From Azolla caroliniana (lineage: Eukaryota > Plantae > Polypodiophyta): 64,000 nucleotides of DNA. This document shows, piece by piece, positions 8,200 to 37,182 of the stretch; position 1 is the stretch's first letter, and each line of letters opens with the position of its first letter. Below the pieces are notes generated by a model. That model was given only the letters and a program-made list of their open reading frames with translations. It was not told the origin of the DNA and did no database searches. The stretch is taken from NCBI GenBank assembly GCA_043228905.1, contig JBHGNT010000020.1:11470001-11534000 (forward strand), read 5' to 3'. The position numbers were made by a program, and so were the translations under genes.

Positions 8200-9048
8200 G
8201 AACGAGTCGGCGCTGATTGCGGACCGGGTTTGTCCGGATACTTTCGGTGGACATCAGTCGGTGGAAATCAGTAAGAAGATCCTGAGCATTGGCAACATGC
8301 TCGATGGGTTCCCAAGTACGTTCGCTTGGACTATAACCGAGCCAATCGACCAAATAATAAAGTTTGTTGCAAACAAGTTTGGAATCGAGGATGGCAGCAA
8401 CTTCATACTCTGGGCCGGCGTCCAACTCCAGCGGGGGCGGCGGCGGTGTAACATGATCGGGAATGGTGTTTGCTTTATAAGGTTCAAGAAGAGAACAATG
8501 GAAAACCGGATGTATCTGAAGCTGCGGAGGGAGATCAAGGCGGAATGTGACATCATTAACCTTACCCGTAATACGGAAAGGACCGAGTCGTCGATAATCC
8601 AACTTGTCGCACGGTCGAGTAGTCTTGATGTGACGACGTAAGAGCCATACTCGATCTCCGATGGCAAAAGAGGAGGGAAGCCAATGACGATCCGCGTAAG
8701 TCTTCTGCGTTTGTTGAGCATGACGAAGATGAGTCGAGAGATCTGTCTGGATCTTGCGTAGTCTCTCCAAATGATCCCCGACACGAGGATTGGTAGGTAG
8801 CTCCGGGGTGTCGATCACCGACCAGCGAGGATGAGAACTGGTATAAGCAAAAAATGGGGAGACCCGAGTCGAGGAGTGAATAGCATTATTATACGCAAAC
8901 TCCGCAAAGTGGAGAATCTCGGCCCAATCGTCCTGTTGATAACTCGGGAAACACCGGAGATATTGCTCCAGTGTTTGGTTTGTTCGTTCCGCCTGCCCGT
9001 CGGTCTGAGGATGGTAGCCGGAGGAGAGGTTGCAGGAGACCTTGATCA
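8200..9048 (-). pseudogene. Integrase C-terminal half plus chromodomain of element C
   Basis: YHPQTDGQAER, GPF/Y and IHPVFH motifs plus a group I-like chromodomain. Confidence 0.9.
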
Positions 9049-9220
9049 TGTCGAATACATGTGTATAATGGACGTATTCACACTATCCCGTTTTGGCCAT
9101 TTATGTAATTAGCATAAAGGGTAGTTGCCCTAAGTCGGTCACTATATATAGTGACCTTGTAACCTTTTTGTAAGGTTGGGTGTTGTATTATTGCTTTATG
9201 GAATAAGGAGTCTTTTGTGC

Positions 9221-16270: not shown

Positions 16271-17670
16271 TTTATAGTGTTCCATCTCTGCTTAGTACTA
16301 TTCCTGACAGTTTGAACCAATTTGGTTCAACATAATGCCTAGTGCCCTCTTTTATAGTGTTCTCAGGAATAATCCTGAAGCTTCTAGAATGTTCCAGAGA
16401 GATCTGGAATATACATCAATTTTCTATGATAAAGTATAAATGAAAATAATATCCTACATATTACAATTCATAGTCTAATGGTAAGGACTCGACCCATGTA
16501 GCATAAGGTCATGGGTTCGAGTCTTGCCATATCATGACACCGGTCGGCATACCGGAGAGCTCACCGAACTCGTTCGGAAACTGCGATTGACATTTGCCAT
16601 GAAGGACCTCGGTCCGGCAAGACACATACTCGGAATGAAGATTAGTCGGAATCGCGCCAAAAGACAACTTTTCCTGTCTCAAACCGACTACATCGGACGT
16701 GTCTTGGAACGCTTCAACATGCAATCGGCCAAGTCTGCTTCGACCCCGCTCCCCGTTCATCTTCGGCTTTCTCAACAAGACTGCCCAACATCCGGTCCGG
16801 AGGGGGAAGACATGAAGTCGGTACCGTATGCATCGGCAGTAGGCTCTCTGATGTACGCGATGATCGCGACACGGCCTGATATTTCTCACGCCGTAGGAGT
16901 CATCAGCAGATTTATGCACATTCCCGGCCGATCGCACTGGAACGCAGTCAAGCATGTGTTCAGATATTTAACCGACACAAAAGACCACGGCATCCTTTTC
17001 GGTCCGAACTCGGACTTCGCCGGCTGTGTGGACAGTCGCAAGTCAACAACCGGATATTGCTTTAAATTCGGCAATGGAGCAATCTCGTGGAAGTCGAAAC
17101 TTCAGGAGTGCATGCATTCAGTAGGGAGAAAATCGAGGCGTATCCCTGTCCGAAAGGACAGGGAATAAACATGATGTAACGGGTGGTAATGGCCTCCCTC
17201 CTTGGGCTATAAAAGAGAGGGAGAGGTATTGAAAAAAGAAAAGGGGGGGGAGAGATATCGCGTTTTGTAGAGGACGAGGTGCTGCCGGACTAGAACCGAG
17301 CTCTTCTCCTCTGTCTTCTCCTTCGTCGTTCTGTGTAGGTTTCGGGAGGCTGACTCTACTCCACAGAACACCCGAGTGCTTCCGGCAAAGTCTCCATTTC
17401 GCGTTCTGAGTGTGTGTGTGTGTGCAGGCGTCAGAGCTTATCACTTGCCGACTCGCCGGTTGTAACTCCTTGACTTATATATATACATTTACATTTGTTC
17501 TGTCTCCATTGTTCCGAGTTAGCTGCTACTCCTCTGAATGTGCGTGTTTGTGCGCGTGTGAAGTACATCGGGAGTTTCCTTCCCCTCTTCTCATTCGGTT
17601 ATTTCTCAGTCCAAGGCCCCCGTGGTCTCGCCTCGTTCTCCATGCACGCGCGTAACAACGCGACATTATT

Positions 17671-17688
17671 TGGTGAACCCGACGTGAA
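17671..17688 (+). promoter_or_regulatory. Primer-binding site complementary to tRNA-Trp
   Basis: TGGTGAACCCGACGTGAA matches the 3' end of plant tRNA-Trp(CCA) as I recall it. Confidence 0.8.
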
Positions 17689-19822
17689 CAGGCGGCAGAG
17701 GAATAGAAAGATGAGAGGGTCGGATCTTGCAGAAGCCATGGCTTCGGCTGTGGATCGGATAGTGAGTGCGCGCGAAGGCATAGGCGCCCTCGATAGGGCT
17801 ATTGAAGCAGTCGTCAGCACGATGGGCCAGTTCGGTGGGAAGGACGCCATGAGCTATCTAGAGGCTTACCGAGCCGAAATGGTGATGAGGGAAATCCCGA
17901 AGGACTGACGACTGGCCGGATTCCCTCGGGTGACGATTTCAGGCATCCACGCGGAGGTGCTCGAGGTACGGGCTGAGAGTCGTACCTGGGAAGAGTTTGA
18001 AGGTCAGCTCCTTGAAGAATAAGGGCTTGATGATGTGCTCCAGCTGTCGAAGTGGGACTACATGGAATGGGTGGAGACCCCTAAAAAGGGGAGAAACGTG
18101 TCGGTGCTCCTTCGGTAGTTTGAAGAACGCTTCGCACAACTTTCGGCGCTGGACCAAACCGTACTGGACACAAGTCGTGTCCTATTGTTCGTTAAATCGG
18201 TGGACGCAAGGGACCGGGAGCAAGTGGGCTTCCTACTGGAGACTGACGATGGCCTAACAACCGACTGGGCCGTGGTAAAGAGAGTTTGCGGCCGTTTTGA
18301 CAAACGGCGTGAGTGGGTCGATAAAGGCTTGACAGGGGCGGGTTCTGTTGCGACAAGGTCGAGGTACCCCCACCGGCACGAAGGGAAGAGACCCGAGACT
18401 AGCTCAAGACCGGCTCAACTTCGACCGGCATGGTCAAAGGCTCGTCCGGGGCAGCGGCTCTAGAGGAGCTGACTCAGATGGTGAGGGACCTCCAGATTGT
18501 GCAACCACGGAGGGACAGCGGCGAACAAGTCCGTGACCAAAGCCCTCCGGCTGGGAACCAGTGCTTGTGGTGCGACGCGGTAGGCCATGCCCGAAAGGAC
18601 TTCGGGGACTTCGCCGAAGCGATAAGAGCTAACTTGGTGTACCTATGGAACGGTCGGGTGCACGCTAGCGAGACCCGGAGGGCCTTGGATCTGAATGTTG
18701 GATGAGGGGGTATGAAACGGCTGATGGAAGAAGCAGTGGCTCGCCACGCGGAGACCGTCCACTACTCGGTGTCAGCTGGAATCCGGGTCGGAAGTGATGA
18801 AGTCCGGAAGACGAAGGAAGCCGGATTCTGGCCGTTGATTCTAGAAGGCCTCGCTGGTGTAAGGCTGAGGAAAGAGGAAGCGGACCGCGCGGAAAGACGG
18901 GTCCGGGAGGTAACCGGGTGGAGTGACCCGGTCGAAGAGAAGACGGGCTTCGTTGAAGCCGCTTGCCAAAACTACGAGGTTCTAGTAGAAGACAAGCGCG
19001 TAGGAAAGACCGACGGGGGGGGGGGGGGGGGGGGGGGGCGGACCCTCACAATGGTATGAGACCCGGTTCGGGCCGAAGCAGAATGATGTCGGTGCATCCG
19101 GCGCACCGGACAAGGCCAAGAAGGCCGGTTATCGGTTGAGCACAGAGATCGAAAGAACCACGGACCTACGAAAGGTCCTGGAGGAACGGATCGAAAGAAC
19201 CACGGACCTACGAAAGGTCCTGGAGTTGTCGTAAGGGAAGTGCTCGGTATCGCGAAGCAGGAGTTCCACAACTCCATCGTAGACTTGGTGAAGCGGAAAA
19301 GGCTTTCGATAGAGCCGGAGCCGGAGAAGCCGGTGGAGGTGCGAACAACGCGCCTAGAAGACATAGCTCTAGAAGACGAGTTGGCGGAGAGCCACTATTC
19401 AAGGCCACATTGGGCCAGAGCAACAACGGAGACCCCCGTTAAGATCGAAGAAGTTCAGGAGCCGGTGGTGGTGTTGGTGGACCACGGTTCCGAAATCAAC
19501 TTGATGTCCATGGACTTCTACAAGAAGGGGAAGTGGCCGATCAACACCAAGCACGGGTGGAAAATATGGGCAGCAACGCGTGCCACGGAAGAGCTGCATG
19601 GCGCCCGAATGTACGAGTGAAAATCGGCGATGTCGAGATCGATCAACACTTCTTCGTGCAAGAGACGTCCTCGCACCCGGTTATACTCGGGGAACCGTAC
19701 ATCACGGCGGCACAGATGGAGACAAAGGTGCTGAAAAATGGTTCAGCATATGCATGAGTCAAAAGCCAGGATGGGCGTCACTTGATCCAGTTCCTGACGG
19801 TGCGACCGAACCATGAGCGTAA

Positions 19823-22800
19823 ATGCGAGACCCTCGGTGGCGAAACCTGAGAGGATTTTTAGAGAGGGCTATCAAGGCGTGGGGCCGCAATAGTCTGGAC
19901 ACCCTGGAGAAACCCCACAAATGTACTATAGGCAAAAAGACATGTACCATAGGTAGGGAATTTTGGTTCTCCGATAGCGGAGGCTGCACGATAGCTGGCG
20001 TAGTTGGCCGGGAAAAGAAGCGGGCGGAGGAGCAACTTCGGGCATGTGGAGTCCTCGGCCCTGAAGAGGAAATCAACGGAGCCGTGGAGGCGGTCTTTTT
20101 CGACGACACCTTGGGGAAGTTACGGGAGGTGTTGGGAGAAGGCCTTAATGACAACCGGACGATTCCGGTATGTTTGGAAAGGATGTACGAAGTCATCGCC
20201 GACTTCGGTAGTGGACTCGAGTCGGATCGGACGACCCGAGTGGATACGAAGTACAAGACTATGGACCGGAAGGTGAGGCCAGTCGCGGCACCCTTGCAGG
20301 AGGGCAGCGAGTTACGGATAAAGGGGGTCGCGTCGAACCCAAGTTTACGAGATCCATCCAGCATAGGACACACGTTCACCGACATAACGCTACGGGAGCT
20401 CAAGATCGGTGGGGGTGGCTTTCTACTGCCGGCAGAAGAGGACTGGTTTCAGAGAATGATCGGGAGGCACGGGAAGGCTTTCGCATTCTCACCGGAGGAG
20501 ATCGGGTGCATAGACCCGACGGTTGTGGAACCAATGGTGATCTTCACGGTACCGCATGTGCCGTGGAATCTCAAACCAATTCTGGTACCCAGAGCTCAAA
20601 TCCCGAAGCTGATGGAGCTGCTGAAACAAAAGGTGGAGATGGGCATTCTCGAACCGTCGAGTACCCCATACTCGAACCGGTGGTTTACAGTGCCAAAGAA
20701 GAACGACACCCTGCGCTTCATACAGGACTTGCAGCCGGTCAACAAGGTGACCATTCGAAACGCAGGTATCGGACCGACCATTGATGAGTTTGTGGAGGCC
20801 TTCGCGGGGAGGTCGATCTACTCAGTCGGTGATCTATACTCGGGGTACGATCAGTTCCAACTAGCCGTAGAGAGCAGGGATGTCACGACGATGCGAACTC
20901 CTCTCGGCCTAGTTCGGATGTGTACCCTACCGCAAGGGGGAACGAACTTGGTGGCGCACATGGTGAATGCGATGAACAAGGTGTTGAGGGACTGCATCCC
21001 AGACATCACCATGCCATTCCTGGACGACATCCCGATCAAAGGTTGTCCGGTGGAGGACAAGGACGAGTCGATCGGGCCTGACGGTTGCCAGAGGTTCGTG
21101 ACGGATCACATCTACGACTGTGAGAAGATGCTACAAAAACTCGAGAGCGCGCGGCTCACCTTCTCAAGAGAAAAATAAGCCTTCGGATATCCGGAGATCC
21201 TAGTAGTCGGACACCTGTGCGGGCCTTACGGCCAGAAGCCGTCCCCGACAAAGGTAGAGGCCATCTCCGCAATGAAGGATGATTGCGGGACGGTCACAGA
21301 GGTCCGAAGGATCCTGGGGGCATGTGCGTTCTATCACATCTGGATTCTGCACTACGTGCATGTCGCGGAGCCGCTTTACGGGTTATTAAAGAAAGGGTGC
21401 CGGTTCGAATGGAGGACGGAGCACACAGAGTTGGTTCGGAGACTGAAGGAGGCGCTCGCCGCGGCACCGGCTCTCCGAAAAGCGGTTTACGGCAAGGAAG
21501 CCCCCATTTATGTCACGGTGGACACGAGCCTGACCGGGATCGAGTGGGTGATCAATCAGGAAGATGAAGACGGCGTACGGTCCTCGATCCGGTTCTGGGC
21601 AAAGGTATTGAGCGAGCGGCAACGAGGATACGCCCTAATCAAGCACGAGCTATGGGGTATCGTTTCGGCAGTCAAGGCCGACAAGGACTATCTGATCGGG
21701 ACGGAAGTGATCATTGAGACAGACTGCCTACCGATTTTGGGTATGTTTTCCGGGTGCGTGACTCCAAACCTGGCGATGCTCAGGTGGATCACGTACATCA
21801 AGTCCCTGAACCCGGAGATACGACACATCTTCGGAAAGGATAACGCCACGGCCGATATACTTTCAAGGGCGAGGTTCAACGACGAGGACGGCATGGTTTC
21901 AGATAACGAAGAAGTCAACGAGGACTTCTTTGGGTCAGCTAACGTAACAACAAGAAAGGGGAGCACTCCGGCGCTTAACAAATTCGACGAGAGCAAGTAC
22001 GACGGGGAATGGCTCCAGATCGGCGGGTCCCTGAAGACAATGACACCGGACGCGGCGTGGACGAAGGAAGAGACCAACCGGATTCAGAAGAAAGCGTACC
22101 GATTCTTCCTACGAGACGGGAGCATATGGAAGCACCCGAAGAAGAGAAACGGCATCCCGCTCCAAGTGGTGGAGAAGAAAGAGGAACAGGAAGAATTGTT
22201 GGCGGCATACCACGAGAGTCCATGGGTCGGGCACCGCGGGACGTGGGCCACATTCGAGAAGCTAAAAGGGAAGTACTCGTGGTCGGGACTATACCGGGAC
22301 GTGCATCGGTTCGTGACGACTTGCGAAAGTTGTCAGATGCACTCCATAGTCCGACATCGGGAAGAGCTTCACCCGACCTACCCTCCGACTGTCCACTTTA
22401 AGTGGATGGTGGATCTGGTGACGATGCCAATGGGGGTAGGGCAGATGCAGTATCTAGTGATGGCTCGGGAGGACCTGATGAACCAGGTGGAAGGCCGAGC
22501 GTTGCAAGACAAAACGACCATGGCCGAGTGCCAATTTCTGATTGAAGAAGTGGTATGCCAGTACGGGTGTGTAGGTAAGATCGTAGCCGACCGCGGAGAA
22601 TTGGACGCGCAAGAGGTGGAAGAGTTGTTTGACCGGCTAGGGATTAAACTCTCTCTCACCACGGCGTACAATCCGGAGGCTAACGGGAAGGTGGAACACG
22701 GACACGGTCCGATCGTCAAAGCATTAGTATGGGCGTGTGGAGGCCAAGTCGGGAACTGGCCGCAACTCTTACCCTATGCATTGTGGGCGGACCGAACTAC

Positions 22801-23449
22801 GCACAGTTCGGTAACCGGGTTCATGCCGGCAAAGCTAATGTACGGGCAGAAGCCGATCATGCCAACGGAGCAGACAATCTCCTCATGGGCCACGGTGGAC
22901 TGGAAAGACGACATGAGCCGAGAGGAGCTGTTAGTAGCACGGATTCGGGAGTTGGAGCGAAGACCGGAGGACGTGGACCGAGCCGCGGAGAAGCTACGGA
23001 TGGCGAGGGTAAAGAACAAAGAACGGTTCGACTGGACTCACCGACTAAGACCGAAGAAGATCGAGGAAGGTGACTGGGTACTAGTGTATGACAACAGCCT
23101 CGACAACCAGCACAGGGCAATGCGGAAGTTTGCAAGAAGGTGGTTTGGGCCTTATGTCGTGACAAGCGCCAACAACATCTCGTGGAGCTCAACGGGACAC
23201 GGATGGTGGTACCGGTGGCTAGAAAAAGGGTCAAAGCATTCAAAAAGCGGCACGAGGCTGAACCGAACCCGGACGACCTGGATAGCGACAACAACCGGCT
23301 CAGAACGGATGACGATCCAGGAGACGAAGGATAAGCGTGGGCCGGTCTTCTCCGGCAAGAGTCTAAATTTGGCGCATACCGGTGGATGCGCGGTTAGGTG
23401 GGGGCGGATGTCGTGGAGAAATTTGTCCCTAGTTGGAAGCCGGGTATAA
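19823..23449 (+). pseudogene. Element D pol (RT, RNase H, integrase) with an in-frame stop at about 21176
   Basis: ORFs 19823-21178 and 21272-23449 are in the same frame. HHCC and DDE motifs present. Confidence 0.88.
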
Positions 23450-24542
23450 CGTGCGTAAACCGGCCCTTACACGTGGGCACAAGTTTTGTTGTATAGTACG
23501 TAGGTGGGTACAAGTCGACTGAGGTAAAATCCTAGGTATGCACGCATTCAGTAGGGAGAAAATCGAGGCGTATCCCTGTCCGAAAGGACAGGGAATAAAC
23601 ATGATGTAACGGGTGGTAACGGCCTCCCTCCTTGGGCTATAAAAGAGAGGGAGAGGTATTGAAAAAAAAAAGGCGGGGAGAGATATCGCGTTTTGTAGAG
23701 GACAAGGTGTTGCCGGACTAGAACTGAGCTCTTCTCCTCTATCTTCTCCTTCTTCGTTCTGTGTAGGTTTCGGGAGGCTGACTCTGCTCCGCGAAACACC
23801 CGAGTGCTTCCGGCAGAGTCTCCATTTCGCGTTCTGAGTGTGTGTGTGTGTGCAGGCGTCGGAGCCTATCACTTGTCGGCTCGCCGGTTGTAACTCCTTG
23901 ACTTATATATATACATTTACATTTGTTCTGTCTCCATTGTTCCGAGTTAGCTGCTACTCCTGTGAATGTGCGTGTTTGTGTGCGTGTGAAGTACATCGGG
24001 AGTTTCCTTCCCCTCTTCTCAGTCGGTTATTTCTCAGTCCAAGGCCCCCGTGGTCACGCCTCGTTCTCCACGCACGCACGTAACAACATGACAACGTAAA
24101 AGTGACTTAGTGATAGAAGAATTAGCCGAGGACATGAAGTTGTGTCCTTGGCAATCATTGCAAGGGATAAAAGATAACAAATTAATAATATATGTTTTAT
24201 CAAGAGTGGTTGCCAAGGAGTTCATCTTAGATGAAATGGTCACAGAGTTTCAAAAGTGAGTATTCTATGTGATATTGTTTTTCATTGGATTGCTTTATTA
24301 ATTTTATTTTTATTCTAAACTTAATGTGTAATGTTTTTTAGCCATAAGGTTTATATGAATATACAAGAGTTGATGATGAAAAAGTTGTCCCTGCCTAGTG
24401 GGAAGAAGTGGAGCAGTCGTGCCGAAAACCATCATCGTGTCAGGCTCTTGAAGAATTTTTCATCGTATTTAGAGAATGGGTAAGTGTGTTTAGATCTTCT
24501 ATAGTTGCTATTAAGAAAATGCACATTTCCTTCTAAATCTTA

Positions 24543-27500
24543 TGTTGAGCGAGCAAGCTCAACTGGATCCGGATCGGATTGAAACCGATAGGCCGTTGGA
24601 GGCCTACGGATCTAGCCTAGGACGTAGGCATAGTTTTGGGAGTCAGTGACAGTCGCTCGTATGAGCATTGAAGTACATGTCAGTACTTCTGTCAGTCCTT
24701 TATGGACTTGTATAAAAGTGATCTCTAAGGACATTCTATGTACACAGAGGGTTATTATTTTTTGAATTGAGTTTTATGTTCTGCTCTCTCTGTCTCTCCC
24801 ACGCATTCTCTGTTAAACCTTCTTCTCTCTACGTTCTGTTGGTATCCGGCTAAGCCGGTTTGTCATACGCTTCTGCATATTAACTTTTACGTGGTATCAA
24901 AGCGCGAGGGTTGAGAACCTCTGCAGCTGACAGACGTTTTGAAGACAAACCCTAACACCCGATGAAGAATAGAAAAGAACTAAGATGGAAAGAGGTATGG
25001 CAAGTTCGCTTCCCACAGAAAAGCTCGACCGGAGCAACTATGCATCCTGGACATATAAAATGCACCAGTACTTACTGGGGCATAGTTATTGGAGCTTTGT
25101 GGAAGGAACGAACAATGTAGCGCCAAAGCCGACACACAAGGACTTCCCAGCATGGGAACAAGGAGCGAGTAGAGTGTTGTATTACCTCGCATCTTGTGTG
25201 CACGATCAGATGCTCAACTACATCAAGGATGCAAAAACGCCGAAGGAGGCCTAGGAAAATCTTCAGAAGATTTTCGCCGCAAGTACCACAGCCCATAAGT
25301 TGCAGCTTTGGCAAGAGCTGCACAACATCCGGCAAAGAGACATGTCGATTACGAGGTACACCACCAAAATAAAGGAGATTTGTGGCGTGCTTGGGTCCAT
25401 CAATGTGATGGTGGACGAAGACGAAATGCTACAAATCTGCCTTGGTGGTCTAGCACAATGGTACGGGCCAATCCGGACGACGATCTACATCCGGGAGAAG
25501 CCACCATCCTACTTCGACCTGCAATCGATGTTGATGGGTCGAGGACCACTCAACCGGACAACCGGATGTTGTACACAAAGGCGGACCAGCCCCGTGGGCG
25601 TGGAGGACGAGGTGGGTCGGCATGCAATGGAGGCGGCCGGCAAGAGTAGAATCGAAGGCACCAAGATAGTGCCGACATCAGTTTCAGACCCTCCACGAGT
25701 AGGGGGAGTCAAAACGGCGTCAGAAACCGGCAAGGGAAGGCCGACACGGAATGTTGGTATTGTGGCAAGAAAGGCCACAGAGAAAGCGAGTGTTGGAAGA
25801 AGCGCGTCGATTCAGACAAATCCAAATCTGGCAAGGCCGAACAGGGAAACTGGCAAAGCTCGCTCTACGTAGAAGGATCGAAAGGATCTGGAACAGGGAA
25901 AACCGGAAAGGGGCCAGCCTTTGTGATGAAGCACAAGGCTAACTCGATGAAGAAGACTACTTCCAAATCTGTATGGTATGTTGATTCCGGAGCATCAAAC
26001 CACATGACGAGCCATGAAGAGTGGTTCTCGTTTTTAGAGAAACAGGAACAACTGGGAATCGTCGAAACCAGAGATGACACCCCTCACCTGATTGTGCATG
26101 TCGGAGAAGTCCCTTTAAGCCATGTTAGACAAAAGGGAAAGCTTATGAACGTACTACACGTTCCGACAATCACAAAGAACTTGGTGTCGATCGGACAAAT
26201 CGTCGACCAGGGAATGCATGTGCGGTTTACGCACCTCGGGTGCTTCATCGAGGAAGAAGGTCAGATAATTGCGCAAGGGCGCAAAGACGGGAGGATCTTC
26301 ATCCTCAACACCAACGACATCTTTGGATATGCGGTAGCATAGCATTTGTGCATGTACTGGATGAGAAGCGGAGGAAGCTGGATCCGAAGTCGGAGAAGTA
26401 CATACTCGTCGGCTACTCGCATGGACAGAAGGGTTATAAGTGTTATAACCCCCGAACTAAACAGGTCCAAGTAAGTCGAGATTTCGAGTTAGTCGGTACT
26501 CTCTACTGACTCCAACTCCCGATGAAGACCCGATTATGGAGGATGAGGCTAGTGAACCTAGAGAGGTTCAGGTAGAAGATGAGGAATTCGGTACTCTAAA
26601 TGAGAGTCTGATCTCATTCCGGCTAAGTGGGCCGAATGAGCAGTTGAGTCGGAATGACCAGTCGGATGAAGAACCGGCAAGTAGTGGAGACTCTGACCTG
26701 CTCTCCCCGCGCAAGGAACCGAGGAGACGGTTCATGCGCAAAGAGAACAGGAAGAAGAAGATGTTGGAATACGACACGAGCAATGAAGAGTTAGATCAGA
26801 GTGATTCTGACTCCCGACAGAACGAAGTCGGATCTTCAGAGACGAAGTCTGAACCGGCCAAGAAGGGCCTCAAACTAGCTGACGAAAAGTTGCGTCGGTC
26901 AACCCGCCAAAAGAACCCCGTAAAACGGTACGGTGTCGTACCTTTCGGCACCGGATCGTTTGCGTGAGTCGGGTGGGAACCATTGGGGTTATTGGACTAG
27001 GAGGAGGAAGAATTTGAGACAAGTTTATGGTTATGGACAAATTATTAGAAAGATAGGTAAGTTATGAATCTCGTGAATCCCACGAGTTTAGTGTATTTAA
27101 ACAATATTTAGATAGTAAGAGACAATTTTGGTCACAAATTCGTGAATCCCATGAATATATTATATTAATTGGTGTTTTAGGAAATATATCCAATTTCCCA
27201 AATATTTTTCACACACCCATTACATTGTGCTCCTCATCCTTATATAGAGATGGGAGAGTCTTTTCTAACCCATGCGTTTTCTCTAATTATAGACTCCATG
27301 CTTTTCCTATAGATAGACTATATGTTTTATCTAAAGTGATTATGTTTGTTCTAACTTGTGCGTATTTTATCAACTATAGCGTTCATGCACGCTAAATGTG
27401 CATGCGTAGCTTTTTCTTTTAGCATGCGTTTTTCTTTTAATTAAAGTTTATCCTACGTGAACTTACGTTTTTTATGTGGGACATCTACTTTTGAACATGA

Positions 27501-30274
27501 ATGAAATGCTAGTGTGATGGTAAGACATTATATTATTAACATGGAGGTGCAAGGTTCGAATCTTGCCCTATGCATGTTATATATATTTTAATATTTTCTA
27601 CTATTTATTCATATTTATTAAATCGGTACTTTATAAGTTTTTCACGTAGTGTACAAAATACACTACGACAACGGATACAATGAGTACATGGCGCATTATT
27701 ATGCGTACATGACCAAGGTGGTGGAAGTGCGTGAGCCAGAGAGCTACGTAGAAGCAGCGAAAGAAGCAAATTGGCGTGCTGCTATGGAAGAAGAAATGTG
27801 AGCACTTGATGCCAATGACACTTGGGACCTTCTCAACCCTCCCCAACAATGTTCGGCTGCAAGTGGGTGTACAAGGTAAAGTACAATGCCGACGGTTCAG
27901 TCAACCGGTACAAGGCCTGGTTAGTGGCGAAGGGATACACACAGACCCAAGGAATCTACTATGACGAGACCTTCGCTCCGGCAGCGAAGATGACGATGGT
28001 TCGTCTGGTACTAGTTGTTGTCGCGGCAAGGGGATGACATCTTCACCAAATGGACGTGAAGAATGTGTTTCTTCAAGGTGACCTTGAAGAACGGGTCTAT
28101 ATGATCCAACCCCCCGGTTTCCAATCTGAGTTGAACAGGTTGGCGGTGTGCCCACTCAAAAAGTCACTTTATGGTCTGATGCAAGCCCCCCAAGCTTGGA
28201 ATGCGAAAATCACGCACCGGTTGCGTAAGATGGGGTTTGTGGCCTCAAATTCTGACTTTTCACTGTTCATCCGGAAAGGTCCGGTTTGTATCCTACTCTA
28301 TGTAGATGATCTAGTCATCACCGGACCCGGATTCGATTAAATCGGCCAAGTGAATTCCTAGTTGTCAGACGCATTTGAAATGAAGGACTTGGGGGACCTT
28401 CATTATTTTCTTGGGATCGAGGTGATTCGGACCCCCGACTGCATATTGCTCTCACAACGCCATTATGTGTTGAATATGTTGTACAAGTTCGGCATGACGG
28501 AATGTCGACCGATCTCCACACCCCTGGACCGGAACCTGAAGCTACATCTCGACTATGGACTGGCCTACAATAAGAAGCGGTTCCGAAAAATTGTCGGAAG
28601 CCTTATCTACTTGACAATTACCCGACCCGACATCAGTTATCCGGTTGGAGTGATCAGTCAGTTTATGCAGAAGCCAACCATGGAGCACCTTAAGTGCGTG
28701 CATCGAATATTGTGATATGTGAGCGAAACGAAGTACCAGGGATTGTTATACCGACACCGTATATCTGGGAAGCTAGCCGGATATACCGATGCCAACTAGG
28801 TTGGTGATGCATCGGATCGCCGATCCACCTCCGGTTACATGTTTTCTCTTGGTAGCAAAAAGTAGCTTACAATGGCTCTGTCGAGCACTGAGGCTGAATA
28901 TCGGGGCACTACTATTGCCACCTATGAAGCCATCTAACTTCGGTGACTACTACAAGACCTCCAAATCGAGGTGCAGACCTTGATCCTGATTTATTGTGAC
29001 AACATAAACATCATACAGTTCACCAAGCACCTTGTACTCCGGACAACGCACATAGAAGTGCATTATCACTTTGTCCGTGAGCGGGTCCTGTGCGGTGAAG
29101 TTGAACTTCGGAATGTTCACACGAATCGGCAGGTCGCTGACATCTTCACCAAGCCGCTTGGATCGAACAAGTTGCAACACTTTTCGGAGATGCTCGGCAT
29201 TCAGCATCTCAACGTGCCGCGCTTGAGGGGGAGAACGGGAACGGAAATGGGTAATGGCACCAGACAAGGAGCCGGAGAGGAAGAAAGAATAAAGGGGGGA
29301 GATGAGCAGAAAAAGGAAGCTGAGCCGACCGAAGGAGTCGGCACATCCAAACAAGTCGGAGCAAGCGGTAGCGGCGGTAGACTCAAGAAGCACAGAGGTA
29401 ACCAGAAGAAGGCCAAGACCCGGACGTGGTCTGATGTGGTGAAGGGCCTAGAAACGGAAAACGAATCGGAAGCAACTGATTCAGACAAGAGCTGGAACGA
29501 ATCGGAGGAAGCCGATTCGGTTCAACAATTTGATTCGGAGGAGCTGGATCGACTAAAGGCCAAGTGGACAAGAAGGCAGCAGAAGTCGACACCGATACGG
29601 AGGAACTGATGGGTCGACAAGCGTTGGAGTTATAGCAGAGAAGGAGCTAAGATGGGCCTGGTGAGCAGACAAGCTGACCAAGGAGGTCGAGATGCACAAA
29701 ACCGAACGGGTCGTGGAAAGCGGAACCGGACCGGACAAGGAGCGCGAGCAACGAGAGGACACCAGAAGGAACCGGAGGAAAGGACCGGCTACTGTAGACA
29801 ATGACACCACGATCTGACCTCAAGTTGAGCTTGAGGGGGAGTGTTGAGCGAGCAAGCTCAACCGGATCCGGATCCGCTGAATAAGCCAGAGCCGGATCGG
29901 TATCCGGGACGGAGAGTTGGATCAGTGTCCGGATGGTATCTGGAACCAGAAGCCAGATCATATTGAAACCAGTAGGTCGTTGGAGACCTACGGATCTAGC
30001 CTAGTACATAGGCATAGTTTTGGGAGTAGTGGCAGTCGCTCATATGAGCATTGAAGTACATGTCAATACTTTTGTCAGTCCTTTATGGACTTGTATAAAA
30101 GTGCTCTCTGAGCACATTCTATGTACACAGAGGGTTATTATTTTTTGAATTGAGTTTTATGTTCTGCTCTCTCTATCTCTCCCGTGCATTCTCTATTAAA
30201 CCTTCTTCTCTCTACGTTCTGTTGGTATCCGACTGAGCCGGTTTGTCACACGCTTCTGCATATTAACTTTTACA
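24543..30274 (+). mobile_element. Ty1/Copia element F, degenerate, inserted in intron 2 of the methyltransferase gene
   Basis: LTRs 24543-24891 and 29842-30274, TSD TCTTA (24538-24542/30275-30279), PBS 24892-24903, PPT 29833-29841. Gag, PR (VDSGAS), RT (YVDD) and RNase H remnants; integrase core deleted near 26330. Confidence 0.93.
26934..27670 (-). mobile_element. Solo LTR nested in F
   Basis: 7-bp terminal inverted repeat TGTCGTA/TACGACA, 4-bp TSD ACGG. The F frame (..KRYG|YNEYMAH..) resumes after it. Confidence 0.85.
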
Positions 30275-32389
30275 TCTTATAATTGCAGAAACCACCTCAC
30301 TCAAAAAAAGTGTGTGACAGTAATGAAGGCATTCCAAGTGCATTCATCACCCATTTGGAACGAGCCAAGTACAAAAAGCGAATGACGAAAAGAAAAGAGC
30401 TAGAGGTGCCCGAAGACTCGGACATAGTAAAAAGTTTTTTGCACAAGGTTGATCCTTTCCGACAATTGTATTATAGTGTATATAATGGTGATGTGGGTAA
30501 TATGCTTGACATATTACCCAAGAGGCATTATACATTGCTCGTCGCGGACATACCATATGGGTTTCAAATAACATGGTCCACATACGACGATGTACCATAT
30601 AAACATCCGCAAATAGAAAATATGGTGAAAGACTTTGCAGAGTTGACCCTGGCTCCATTATGGCAAATAGTAATATTTCATAGTATGGTTCACGCTTTAT
30701 CGGTCACTACTGCACTGAAGTCGAGATGCCATGTCACCGAACACATGCATTGGTAAGCTTTTAGTTGCTATATATTTAATATATGCCTTTTATTGTACTT
30801 ACTACATAAATATTGACTTGTTTCCATTCCATTACAAATAGGGTTAACACGAACATAACTCGTACCCTAGGCGATCGAATGGTGAGTGATGTGGAGCATA
30901 TGTGTGTGGGGTACTACGATGCTATTTCTAAGAAGAAGGCTTGGGCACATGTGAATGAGCGAAACATCGTCAATTATATCATGTGCCCAGCAGTAACGAA
31001 GAAATTGCGCCACATTTCTGGCGACAAGTGTCTAGTAAACCCATATCAAAAGCCCCAGCGATTAATTAATAGATTGGTCGAGCTGTTCTCCAACCCTGAT
31101 GATTGGGTGCTCGACTTATTCTCTGGAACAAGTATTCGTGTGATCAATCTATCTTAAAATAAATTAGAATTTCTCGTCTTTGTTTTCTTATTTCTGCATG
31201 TATGATCGTTTATTCAGGAACAATGACTGTGTGCGCTCTCAAATTGTCTAAGAACTGCATCGTCTTGGAGAAGGACCCCTCCCAAGTAAATTTTATTAAA
31301 ATGAGGATCCAAGGTATCTGGGATTGTCCCGACCAAGACCAAGAGGTTGGGGTAAAGCATATAAATGAAACTGAGATGTTTCAACTGACCTCCAGGGAAC
31401 TGATGGAACCTATAGACGAAGGAGGGGACATGGTTGACTTCGAAGATGTACTAGAGTCTGAACAAAGACAAGATTCAGTTGAGCAAACGGAACAAGTGGA
31501 TACGACACAACTATTAGCTGATCTTGTAGGGCAGCCTGTTCTAGACCTCCTAATGGAGTGAATTGTATAATACTTTGTATTTGTAACTGAAAAATTGTTT
31601 TGAAATATAAGAACTTTTTGTTTGAGTATAATTTGTTTAATCTATCTGATTGGTGTCTCAAACTTTATGTGTCTATCATACTTTTACAAAGGTTGACTTG
31701 TAAAGTATATGGTTAAGTATAATTTCCATTGAATAGATGATTTTAACTTATCGATTGTATGACAAATGTTGGTTATAATTGTTTCTCGATTAATATAATT
31801 GGATTTAGTCTTTATTCTAAGATTTATGTTGTCTTTAATCTTGGTAATTTAGTTTCGAGTAAACACAATAATATTAAGTCAACATCGTTGCTCACATGAT
31901 AATACATTCACGTTGTTCATGTATGATTGGCATATAATGTTCATAGTGGTTTTTGGGCATCCGTGGTATATCGTGAGATATTCGTTTGTGAAAGTTTTTC
32001 TAATTAATCCAAAAATCCTATTTACAAAATCCACATAGCAATCTTTATAAGATTTAGAGACAAATATAGTAACACAACTGCATTTCTAAATTGTTTAAGT
32101 TGGATTCAAATTACACATTATGTACAATGAAGCATATTACAATTATAGTTGGATGCATTCCCGTCATCTTATCTAAGATTAGGATAAATTTGTGTATGAA
32201 TTGAGAAAATATCGATTAAATTTTTAATCTTAAAAATATTAACTGCCTTTTTGAGTGATGTTTTTAAAAATCGTGTGTGCATGCATGATAGATTCTTGAA
32301 AATTTGTTAAAAAATGGTAATTCTTGATATCTCACGTATGTATCAATAAAGGAATGTGACATATTGCCTGTTTCAAATGTCCTGGTGTT

Positions 32390-32750
32390 TGAGGATGATA
32401 ACCTGTGTACGCATAGAATGGTGTAACCCTAGTAGAGGAGTGGATCAAAATATTATATGAAAATTCGGCAAAAAGTAATATATCAGCCCAATCATCTTGC
32501 TGATAATTGATGAAATAGTGAAGATACTACTCCAATGTCTAATTTCCACATTATGTTCGTCCAATAGTTTGGGGATGATAGCATGAGAAGAGGTTGCAGG
32601 AGACTTTGAGCATTGTGAAGAGATACTTCCAAATTTTAGATATAAAATGAGGTCCATGATCACTGATGGTGTTGTCGGGAATATCATCGTGACAAAAAAC
32701 TTCACGCATAATGAGATTTGCGGTGTCCTCACTAGTGATATCTTATTGAT
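32390..32750 (-). pseudogene. Degenerate chromovirus integrase fragment
   Basis: Minus strand reads MREVFCHDDIPDNTISDHGPHF..YHPQT..YQQDDWADILLFAEFSYN, homologous to element C. Confidence 0.8.
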
Positions 32751-32835
32751 CAACTATTGTTAAGATAACATTGAATCCTTTAGAATTTGGAAGATTTGTA
32801 ATAAAAGCTTAAGATATAGCAAGTTCATTGAATCG

Positions 32836-33333
32836 TGTCACCACACAAGACGCTCTCTCTCATCTCTTCCTCTCTTCTGCTCTATATTACAGAAGCTCTA
32901 TATTCTCTTCTTCCCCTTAATAAGATTTGCCCTAGCTCCACATATTTATACAAGGGATATATATTCTTATTATTATGTTATAATAATAGAAATAGTAGTT
33001 AATCGGCCAACAGGTCGACTCGACTATCCGACCCACAAGTCGACAATTAGTTTGTTTCGACTACCCGACTCCTATGTCAACTATCCAGTCGGCCCAACTG
33101 GAAAACCTTGTCGATGACCATACGGTCGGCCTGACTTGGTTGGTCCTATCCTTCACTTAGATCATCTATCCAATATTGTCGACTACCATAGGCAACTCTC
33201 CTTCAATAAGTTAATCGACTATCAAGTCGACTTGTTGTTTGATCCGATCGACCATCGTAGATTCGGTTTGTCGCTTACTACAGTCCGACTACCAATGCCA
33301 AATTCTCCTATTAGGAGGGAAAAAACTCTCACA
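32836..33333 (-). repeat. Possible LTR remnant
   Basis: TG start, minus-strand TATA, CGAC-rich repeats. Right boundary and TSD not established. Confidence 0.35.
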
Positions 33334-34108: not shown

Positions 34109-34153
<45 letters not shown>

Positions 34154-35978: not shown

Positions 35979-37182
35979 TGTTGGGAAACAGGTCCCTCCG
36001 GATGGGAAGGAAGAAGAACAGTGCCGACGAACAAACTCGGCCGAGGCCGAAACGGGATGAGGAGTACCCGGCTACGGAGAGCCGGATGGCGCAGGCCCGG
36101 TATGAACCGGATGAGGAGTACCCGGCTACGGAGAGCCGGATGGTGCAGGCCCGGTATGAACCGGATGAGGAGTACCCGGCTACGGAGAGCCGAATGGTGC
36201 AAGCCCGGTATGAACCGGATGAGGAGTACCCGGCTACGGAGAGCCGGATGGTGCAGACCTGGTATGAACCGGAGGAAGAGACATATTCGTAAATATGTTT
36301 CTGAGAGCCCATTGTGGCTATATTTGTAAATAGCCGAAAAGTCATATTAGTATAAATATGACTTAGGGCAAACTAATATGTTACTGTTGCTGTTGTTACT
36401 TTTCTTGTTGGTGCAAGAAGAAGAGAGAGCGCGTAACTGTACACAGAGAGAGAGAGAGAGAGACGAGGTCGTTGCCTCTGTTGTAACCGCCGCCTGTGAC
36501 GAAGATCGTGAGTTCGAGGTCATTGCCTCAGTGTACTCACTGTTTTGTACATTCATACATAGTGACAGTTTGCAGCCTGTGGGCTGCCATGGTTTTTCCC
36601 CTAGTTTGGGGTTTTCCACGTAAACCTCCTGTGTACCATCTCTCTTCTCTGTGTCGTGTTTTATTTCCCGTTTTCTGTGTATGAAAAGAATCTTGGTTGT
36701 GGCCGAGCGTCGGACATAAGGAACGTGGAGTTCCCTTCAAGTGGTATCAGAGCGAAATCGACACAGAAAATGGACGAATCGTGTGGCGGCATGTTCAAGC
36801 TCACCGGCTCCAACTATTCAGTGTGGAAGTCGAAGATGAGGGACATGCTCGTGGTTAAAGACCTTTGGCTGCCGGTTCAGTTCGGGGACAAGAGACCGGA
36901 CAAAATCGACGCCGCGATATGGGAGGTGATGCACATGAAGACAACGGCGTACATACGGTGCTTCATCGACATGAGCCTGTACAACAACTTCAATGAAGAG
37001 AGCAAGGCTCATGAGCTCTGGGAGAAGATCGGCATAATGTTCCAAAACAAAAATGTTGTTAATCAGGTTTCGGTATTCCGGAAGCTAGTAAGACTCCGGT
37101 ACCAAGATGGCTCCAGCATGCGGAGCATATGAATGCCTTCCAGGGGCTGATACACCAGGCAACGTCATTGGAAGTACCTCTT
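35979..37182 (+). mobile_element. B-family Copia 5' end: LTR 35979-36739 (4 x 54-bp repeat), PBS-Met 36742-36753, gag from 36770
   Basis: TGTTGGG..CTTCA ends, TGGTATCAGAGC, MDESCGGMFKLTGSNYSVWKSKMRDML. Confidence 0.9.

Follow-up and report, generated by a model that had tools for sequence, protein, structure and literature searches.

How does a land plant come to carry a gene for a bacterial-style DNA amino-methyltransferase, and is such a gene a tool of the host or the cargo of a mobile element? The question is raised by a 64,000-nt stretch of the Azolla caroliniana contig JBHGNT010000020.1 (the window hereafter; all position numbers count along its whole length), in which a + strand gene between 24094 and 31561 is predicted to encode an enzyme of this kind. 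DNA methylation in land plants is generally attributed to enzymes that act on C5 of cytosine. We conclude, with a probability of roughly 0.85, that the stretch is a decayed fragment of the accessory gene of a multi-copy plant DNA transposon of the cut-and-paste kind. The evidence for this reading comes from the exon-intron structure of the gene, from its relatives in other plants, and from the number of its copies in DNA sequencing runs.

The gene and its relatives

Five exons, here called A to E, are joined by canonical GT..AG introns of compatible phase (Table 1). An earlier sequence-only reading had joined three downstream open reading frames (ORFs) through short introns and had placed two further exons upstream, at 24094-24255 and 24342-24479. 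The ORFs are present, their splice sites lie where it put them and the phases fit, and the GT..AG borders of the upstream pair were confirmed, with fitting phases at the junction of exons A and B. Its limits for the downstream exons also stand at all borders but one, as 30283 is only the start of an ORF and exon C begins at 30289. At the two downstream junctions, the split codons are TG plus G, which gives Trp, and A plus GA, which gives Arg. The former corresponds to the conserved Trp of a W-x-K-x-N motif in the relatives, and the latter occupies the position of the second Gly of their S-adenosylmethionine (SAM) loop.

Every search, alignment and selection count was run exon by exon, never on the joined protein. 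The ORF containing exon D, taken alone, scored 33.5 bits against PF01555 (N6_N4_Mtase), the Pfam profile that the sequence-only reading had named, for which the curated cut-off is 26.7 bits. Full-length relatives matched this profile with expect values (E) down to 7.6e-18. In a search of solved structures, exon D gave weak matches to DpnA, RsrI and MboIIA (E 0.002 to 0.8), while exon E gave a weak match to CcrM in NCBIfam. The motifs follow the permuted order of the beta class, as had been claimed: DIPYG (30547-30561, in exon C) is N-terminal to NPYQKP and DLFSGT, and all relatives display the same order. The SAM loop of the window copy reads F-S-G-T-R and is without F-x-G-x-G; the relatives have FSGSG or FAGTG, so this defect is confined to the window copy. 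Collectively, these features describe a real but broken gene, predicted to be an intron-containing DNA amino-methyltransferase gene of the bacterial style (beta class).

Relatives of this gene are few. When exon D was run with HMMER against the full set of 1.84 billion representatives, only 72 proteins were found at E<=0.001, and most of these are single-exon pieces assembled from samples that contain plants. The long relatives comprise Ginkgo Gb_37443, two proteins of Chara braunii, one of Riccia sorocarpa and a 789-aa intronless metagenome ORF. The sources that could be traced are Ginkgo, Chara and Riccia, and the others are metagenome or sequencing-run assemblies with no organism on record. 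Ginkgo and Riccia each have several paralogues. The methyltransferase alignment, used as a search profile, matched mostly short, unnamed metagenome fragments, and none of its matches was labelled bacterial or phage. One Chara braunii protein model of 1825 aa (P0032, GBG86584.1) displays the N-terminal domain described below and the methyltransferase unit twice in tandem, probably two copies of the element merged by annotation.

Exons A, C, D and E lie in order along the long relatives, with no residues missing at the junctions (tblastn and alignments), and exon B is matched by a Ginkgo paralogue (P0076). Since this colinearity holds with Ginkgo Gb_37443, Chara, Riccia and the intronless 789-aa ORF, the gene model is more than chance. 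Exon A is 51% identical to residues 306-348 of Ginkgo P0024 (tblastn) and 47% identical to the locus L002. Exon C is alignable with proteins of Ginkgo, Chara and Riccia and with P0067, a metagenome relative, and exon E with P0013, P0020 and the C-termini of the Ginkgo proteins. On the metagenome contig L003, the stretch 300-390, upstream of the exon C homologue, resembles by eye a DEAH-box helicase exon and not exon B, owing perhaps to chimeric assembly or to the capture of a fragment.

Exons A, C, D and E also match four loci (L002, L004, L006 and L007) at which the same gene also specifies a conserved domain at the N-terminus, about 200 aa long. From these alignments, the intact gene of the relatives is predicted to encode this domain, followed by a helical linker, which corresponds to exons A and B of the window, and by a beta-class N6/N4 amino-methyltransferase, which corresponds to exons C to E. 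By homology, exon A belongs to the linker that joined the lost N-terminal domain to the methyltransferase. The sequence-only reading had described an extra helical N-terminal region. Its two exons are present and make up the helical linker, and this linker leads to a ParB-like domain that has been lost rather than forming an N-terminal region of its own.

The introns give an indication of the age of the lineage. Intron C/D, which splits the Trp codon TG/G, is found at the same place and in the same phase in the window, in L003 (72% identical), in the sequencing-run contig L005 (56% identical) and in the Riccia locus L001. Intron D/E is present in L005 and absent from Riccia and L002, where nothing separates the two parts. 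A comparison of the window with L003 gave 71-72% identity for the exons (exon C 72%) and 43% for the introns, which in essence cannot be aligned. The differences fall on codon positions 1, 2 and 3 at rates of 18%, 14% and 52%, and the ratio of nonsynonymous to synonymous differences (pN/pS) is 0.18. This low ratio and the skew among codon positions indicate that through most of its history the lineage encoded a functional protein. Judging from these comparisons, the predicted amino-methyltransferase lineage is long eukaryotic, and its intron C/D is old and held in common with a liverwort. This agrees with the earlier proposal of a long-eukaryotic, intron-bearing family.

Transposon association and alternative explanations

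The genomic surroundings of the relatives provided insights into the nature of this family. At three loci, from the fern Adiantum nelumboides (L006), the liverwort Riccia (L001) and a metagenome (L004), a DUF7869-type transposase is encoded upstream of the methyltransferase gene on the opposite strand, so that the two genes stand head-to-head. In the Riccia locus, a 16-bp palindrome also forms arrays, which lie on both the upstream and the downstream side of the gene and within one of its introns. Among the relatives, not every locus has every part (domain, transposase and palindromes). The same Riccia locus holds a second element with a DUF7869 transposase (L001:18064-22101), which has no methyltransferase gene and whose palindrome is another one (core CCATGAGnCTCATGG), present in arrays and at the two ends of that element.

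Meanwhile, the copy number was assessed over 29900-32900. Thousands of contigs from DNA runs of two organisms, 80-99% alike, cover 30280-32830, with about 15-60 variant contigs for each listed site within the gene, and contig depth is very low over 32829-32900, at the end of the stretch examined. So many divergent copies fit a transposon family and not a single host gene. The sequence-only reading had proposed a family that was either domesticated or transposon-borne. The transposon-borne form is favoured by the pairing with a transposase and by the high copy number, and the flanks of homologues, where that reading had thought a transposase might lie, hold one at the three loci named above.

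The N-terminal domain of the relatives was characterized through its predicted structure. An AlphaFold model of the P0067 domain, based on a 12-row family alignment, had a mean predicted local distance difference test score (pLDDT) of 83.5. An earlier model based on 5 rows had reached a pLDDT of 56, and the fold search with it was meaningless. The best Foldseek matches of the P0067 model were ParB, Noc, KorB, Spo0J and sulfiredoxin (E 0.05-0.3, probability up to 0.96, template modelling (TM) score about 0.42). In an independent all-against-all structure alignment, only 5 of 48,161 chains had a Z-score of at least 5, namely PadC, pNOB8 ParB-N, sulfiredoxin, a ParB-fold serine kinase and KorB. 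A protein language model pointed to fungal DUF3723 and phage ParB_N clusters as look-alikes, which are leads only. The modelled structures lend moderate support to a ParB/Srx fold for this domain, in line with the earlier suggestion that the N-termini of homologues might be ParB-like.

Several observations weigh against the transposon reading or parts of it. Searches of the 64-kb window by tblastn with Ginkgo, Chara, Riccia and metagenome proteins, and with all ORFs of the Riccia locus, found neither a transposase nor a ParB-like part. There is no palindrome array in 24094-24545 or 30275-32400, and no terminal repeat of the element in the window. As all four of these hallmarks are missing here, the case for a transposon origin is built on the relatives and on the copy number. 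With regard to transcripts, no RNA run was among the listed holders of matching contigs, and the contigs of a putative RNA run were short paralogue pieces that contained no junction. The structural matches of the N-terminal domain are modest (Z 5.0-6.4, with the Foldseek E values given above), and by sequence Pfam yielded only a weak match to DUF6551 (E 0.006-0.009) and a profile search of solved structures yielded nothing. Finally, the catalytic tetrad of the window copy is D-I-P-Y, as opposed to the (D/S)-P-P-(Y/F) of the PF01555 class. With the exception of one decayed Ginkgo model (D-I-S-Q), the tetrad of the relatives is D-[I/F/L]-P-[Y/H], so the first Pro is replaced family-wide.

One alternative is that the fragment is what remains of a domesticated host gene, a cellular plant amino-methyltransferase (for example, a germline writer of N4-methylcytosine (4mC) or N6-methyladenine (6mA)) rather than transposon cargo. 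Purifying selection on the coding sequence and the old introns would suit such a gene, and Marchantia does use the bacterial-type DN4MT1 in sperm (10.1101/2021.02.12.428880). However, a host gene would have to be reconciled with dozens of divergent variants per site in DNA runs, with several paralogues in both Ginkgo and Riccia, with a transposase linked at three unrelated loci, and with a window copy that is decayed and sits inside a retrotransposon stack. We therefore regard this explanation as improbable. Even less probable is that the gene is an orthologue or close paralogue of Marchantia DN4MT1 or bdelloid N4CMT, and thus an N4-cytosine methyltransferase. These enzymes have the same Pfam domain in the same permuted order, and bryophytes are among the organisms in which both groups occur. 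Nevertheless, DN4MT1 has TSPPY and N4CMT has SPPY and a chromodomain (10.1101/2021.02.12.428880; PMC8885841), while the window copy has D-I-P-Y and no chromodomain. The other aligned copies have the family tetrad, the decayed Ginkgo model aside, and a different N-terminal domain, and no Marchantia-labelled protein was found among the matches that carry a source name.

Domains of this type are characteristic of prokaryotic restriction-modification systems and the best solved relatives are bacterial, which would be expected if the stretch were bacterial or phage DNA, through contamination or very recent transfer. That explanation is scarcely credible for a gene with four spliceosomal-type introns at conserved positions, one of them holding a Copia element with its target-site duplication (TSD), in DNA with a plant-like GC content of 0.37. 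The relatives traced to an organism are from plants and a stonewort, and no match in the exon D scan or the profile search bears a bacterial or phage organism label. A chance set of ORFs, which we consider as unlikely, is opposed by the Pfam score above the cut-off. The accessory gene of a plant DNA transposon thus remains the explanation that we prefer.

Decay of the window copy and its surroundings

The window copy of the accessory gene is dead. Its surviving part is the rear two-thirds of the gene, buried among retrotransposons, and it has lost its 5' end, suffered a frameshift in exon B, received a Copia element in an intron and had a Gly of the SAM loop replaced by Arg. The sequence-only reading had called the copy dead on account of the frameshift, the Arg and the missing 5' end, and all three lesions are real.

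Table 1. Position of the gene fragment, its introns and the elements that interrupt or border it (window numbering)
Feature	Position	Strand	Details
3' long terminal repeat (LTR) of Gypsy D	23538-24093	+	Aligns with the 5' LTR at 17109-17665; its end cuts the 5' side of the gene
Exon A, 5'-truncated	24094-24255	+	Open to the LTR border; donor GT at 24256
Exon B	24342-24479	+	Acceptor AG at 24340-24341; donor GT at 24480; 1-nt deletion near 24399
Copia LTR retrotransposon	24543-30274 (5.7 kb)	+	LTRs 24543-24891 and 29842-30274, 92.5% identical; in intron B/C
Exon C, catalytic half	30289-30752	+	No stops; acceptor AG at 30287-30288; donor TG/GTAAG at 30752/30753
Intron C/D	30753-30841	+	GT..AG borders; acceptor AG at 30840-30841; 89 nt; splits the conserved Trp codon TG/G
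Exon D	30842-31131	+	NPYQKP at 31038-31055; start of SAM loop, DLFSGT, at 31113-31130; donor A/GTAT at 31131/31132
Intron D/E	31132-31217	+	GT..AG borders; acceptor CAG at 31215-31217; 86 nt
Exon E	31218-31561	+	Rest of the SAM-binding region; acidic tail; stop at 31559-31561
AT-rich tail	31562-32390 (0.8 kb)	+	Repeated in DNA runs at exon-like depth; no palindrome array
Gypsy integrase fragment	32391-32753	-	32391-32613 is 70% identical to 8827-9049 (in a Gypsy integrase ORF); bounds the piece

The 5' loss is associated with the retrotransposon Gypsy D (17109-24093), whose LTRs are well over 90% identical. Its 5-bp flanks (AGGAG and ACGTA) differ and thus form no TSD. The 5' flank is a Copia reverse transcriptase fragment and the 3' flank is exon A of the methyltransferase gene, a pairing that points less to a simple insertion than to a deletion or to recombination between two copies of Gypsy. 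Because exon A is open right up to 24094 at the end of the Gypsy LTR, and because the flanks lack a TSD and the other flank is Copia sequence, the 5' part of the gene is truly lost.

In exon B, the missing base changes the reading frame partway along the alignment with Ginkgo P0076. The Copia element is flanked by the TSD TCTTA (24538-24542 and 30275-30279), and a Met-tRNA-type primer site follows its 5' LTR. Intron B/C now measures 5.8 kb and would measure about 72 nt without Copia, similar to its two downstream neighbours (86 and 89 nt). The change from Gly to Arg results from a G-to-A substitution at 31131, the last base of exon D, where L005 has G/GA (Gly), and the same substitution weakens the donor context. 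Exons C to E are without stop codons.

Beyond the stop codon of the gene, the AT-rich tail is probably more of the same element. Other repeats were observed in the window. The region 32997-33301 is a cluster of short repeats, with five of the six CGACTAYC sites of the window and several GTCGAC palindromes, and has the appearance of subterminal repeats from a DNA transposon. Two tandem arrays, at 36051-36280 (4.3 copies) and 1378-1809 (about 8 copies), share a 54-nt period (18 codons) and lie in G+C-rich, retrotransposon-like DNA. A perfect (AG)20 microsatellite at 34110-34150 is followed by a sequence that looks tRNA-like, in which ARAGORN calls no tRNA.

Proposed function and comparison with known systems

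Based on the intact relatives, we postulate that the ParB-like domain would dock on the palindromes of the element, and that the methyltransferase would then place 6mA or 4mC on nearby DNA of the element itself. The presence of an Asp in the catalytic motif would point to N6-adenine over N4-cytosine as the target. The N6_N4_Mtase class has switched specificity repeatedly (PMC8885841), and hence the target base is not fixed by this residue. Such a mark might tune the timing of transposition or shield the element from host silencing, as proposed for algal elements (PMC12477816).

We put forward tentatively, and with more doubt than confidence, the idea that intact sister copies in the same genome are active today. 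In these copies, the ParB-like domain would target the amino-methyltransferase to the palindromes of the element, and the resulting 6mA/4mC self-mark would control transposition or block host silencing by 5-methylcytosine. If true, this would be an element-encoded epigenetic layer of a kind not described in land plants. If ferns, Ginkgo, liverworts and Chara share a high-copy transposon family that carries its own amino-methyltransferase, 6mA/4mC signals in their genomes could plausibly stem from it, and the family would exemplify a mobile element with its own epigenetic writer. The interest lies in this family rather than in the window locus, which adds only a dead fragment, albeit one that is clear on the exon-intron structure, on the old common intron and on the decay of copies.

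Literature word searches found no publication on a transposon with ParB-like and methyltransferase parts in ferns or other land plants, and a literature search found none on DUF7869. Similar cargo genes have been published for algal transposons (PMC12477816), so an amino-methyltransferase family of this sort has precedents that the sequence-only reading did not name. The closest description is from a 2025 paper on Ectocarpus, in which the element Sola1-1_Ec32 encodes an accessory protein of 1104 aa with ParB-like and DNA amino-methyltransferase domains, proposed by its authors to bind and mark its own element (PMC12477816). As in the relatives described here, the accessory gene lies on the strand opposite to the transposase and combines a ParB-like domain with an N6/N4 methyltransferase domain. 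Unlike Sola1-1_Ec32, the window copy has neither a ParB part nor a transposase. That element, of 21.5 kb, belongs to a brown alga, and its likeness to the DUF7869-linked family is drawn from the published description. A study of red algae also reported accessory genes with ParB domains beside inverted-repeat arrays (10.1101/2025.02.11.637652).

ParB-type domains N-terminal to adenine-type enzymes of prokaryotic or phage derivation are likewise found in the ParB-fused methyltransferases of chlorophytes and chytrids and in those of phage ParB-terminase loci (Iyer et al., PMC4738411). Those enzymes form the 'chlorophyte-type Dam' clade, within the EcoKI/TaqI-like group, whereas the family described here is of the permuted PF01555 beta class. 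The same survey, from 2015, listed few N6A DNA methyltransferases in land plants (PMC4738411). Among bacterial enzymes, DpnA, M.RsrI, M.MboIIA and CcrM have the same domain and motif order as the Azolla gene, with weak sequence matches. In contrast to the plant family, the bacterial beta-class enzymes have no introns and no transposon, and CcrM and others have the motif D-P-P-Y.

Two other eukaryotic cases differ from this family in both architecture and catalytic motif. Marchantia DN4MT1a/b are, like the gene described here, bacterial-type amino-methyltransferases resident in a land plant. They are a host gene pair with TSPPY and a demonstrated 4mC function in sperm (10.1101/2021.02.12.428880), whereas our family has D-x-P-Y/H, a ParB-like domain, many copies and a linked transposase. 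Bdelloid N4CMT, another permuted PF01555 enzyme, came from bacteria and acquired introns in its eukaryotic host, and it too is connected with transposons, on which it acts (PMC8885841). However, N4CMT is a single-copy gene with SPPY and a C-terminal chromodomain that silences transposons on behalf of its host (PMC8885841), while in the family to which the Azolla fragment belongs, it is the transposon that carries the gene.

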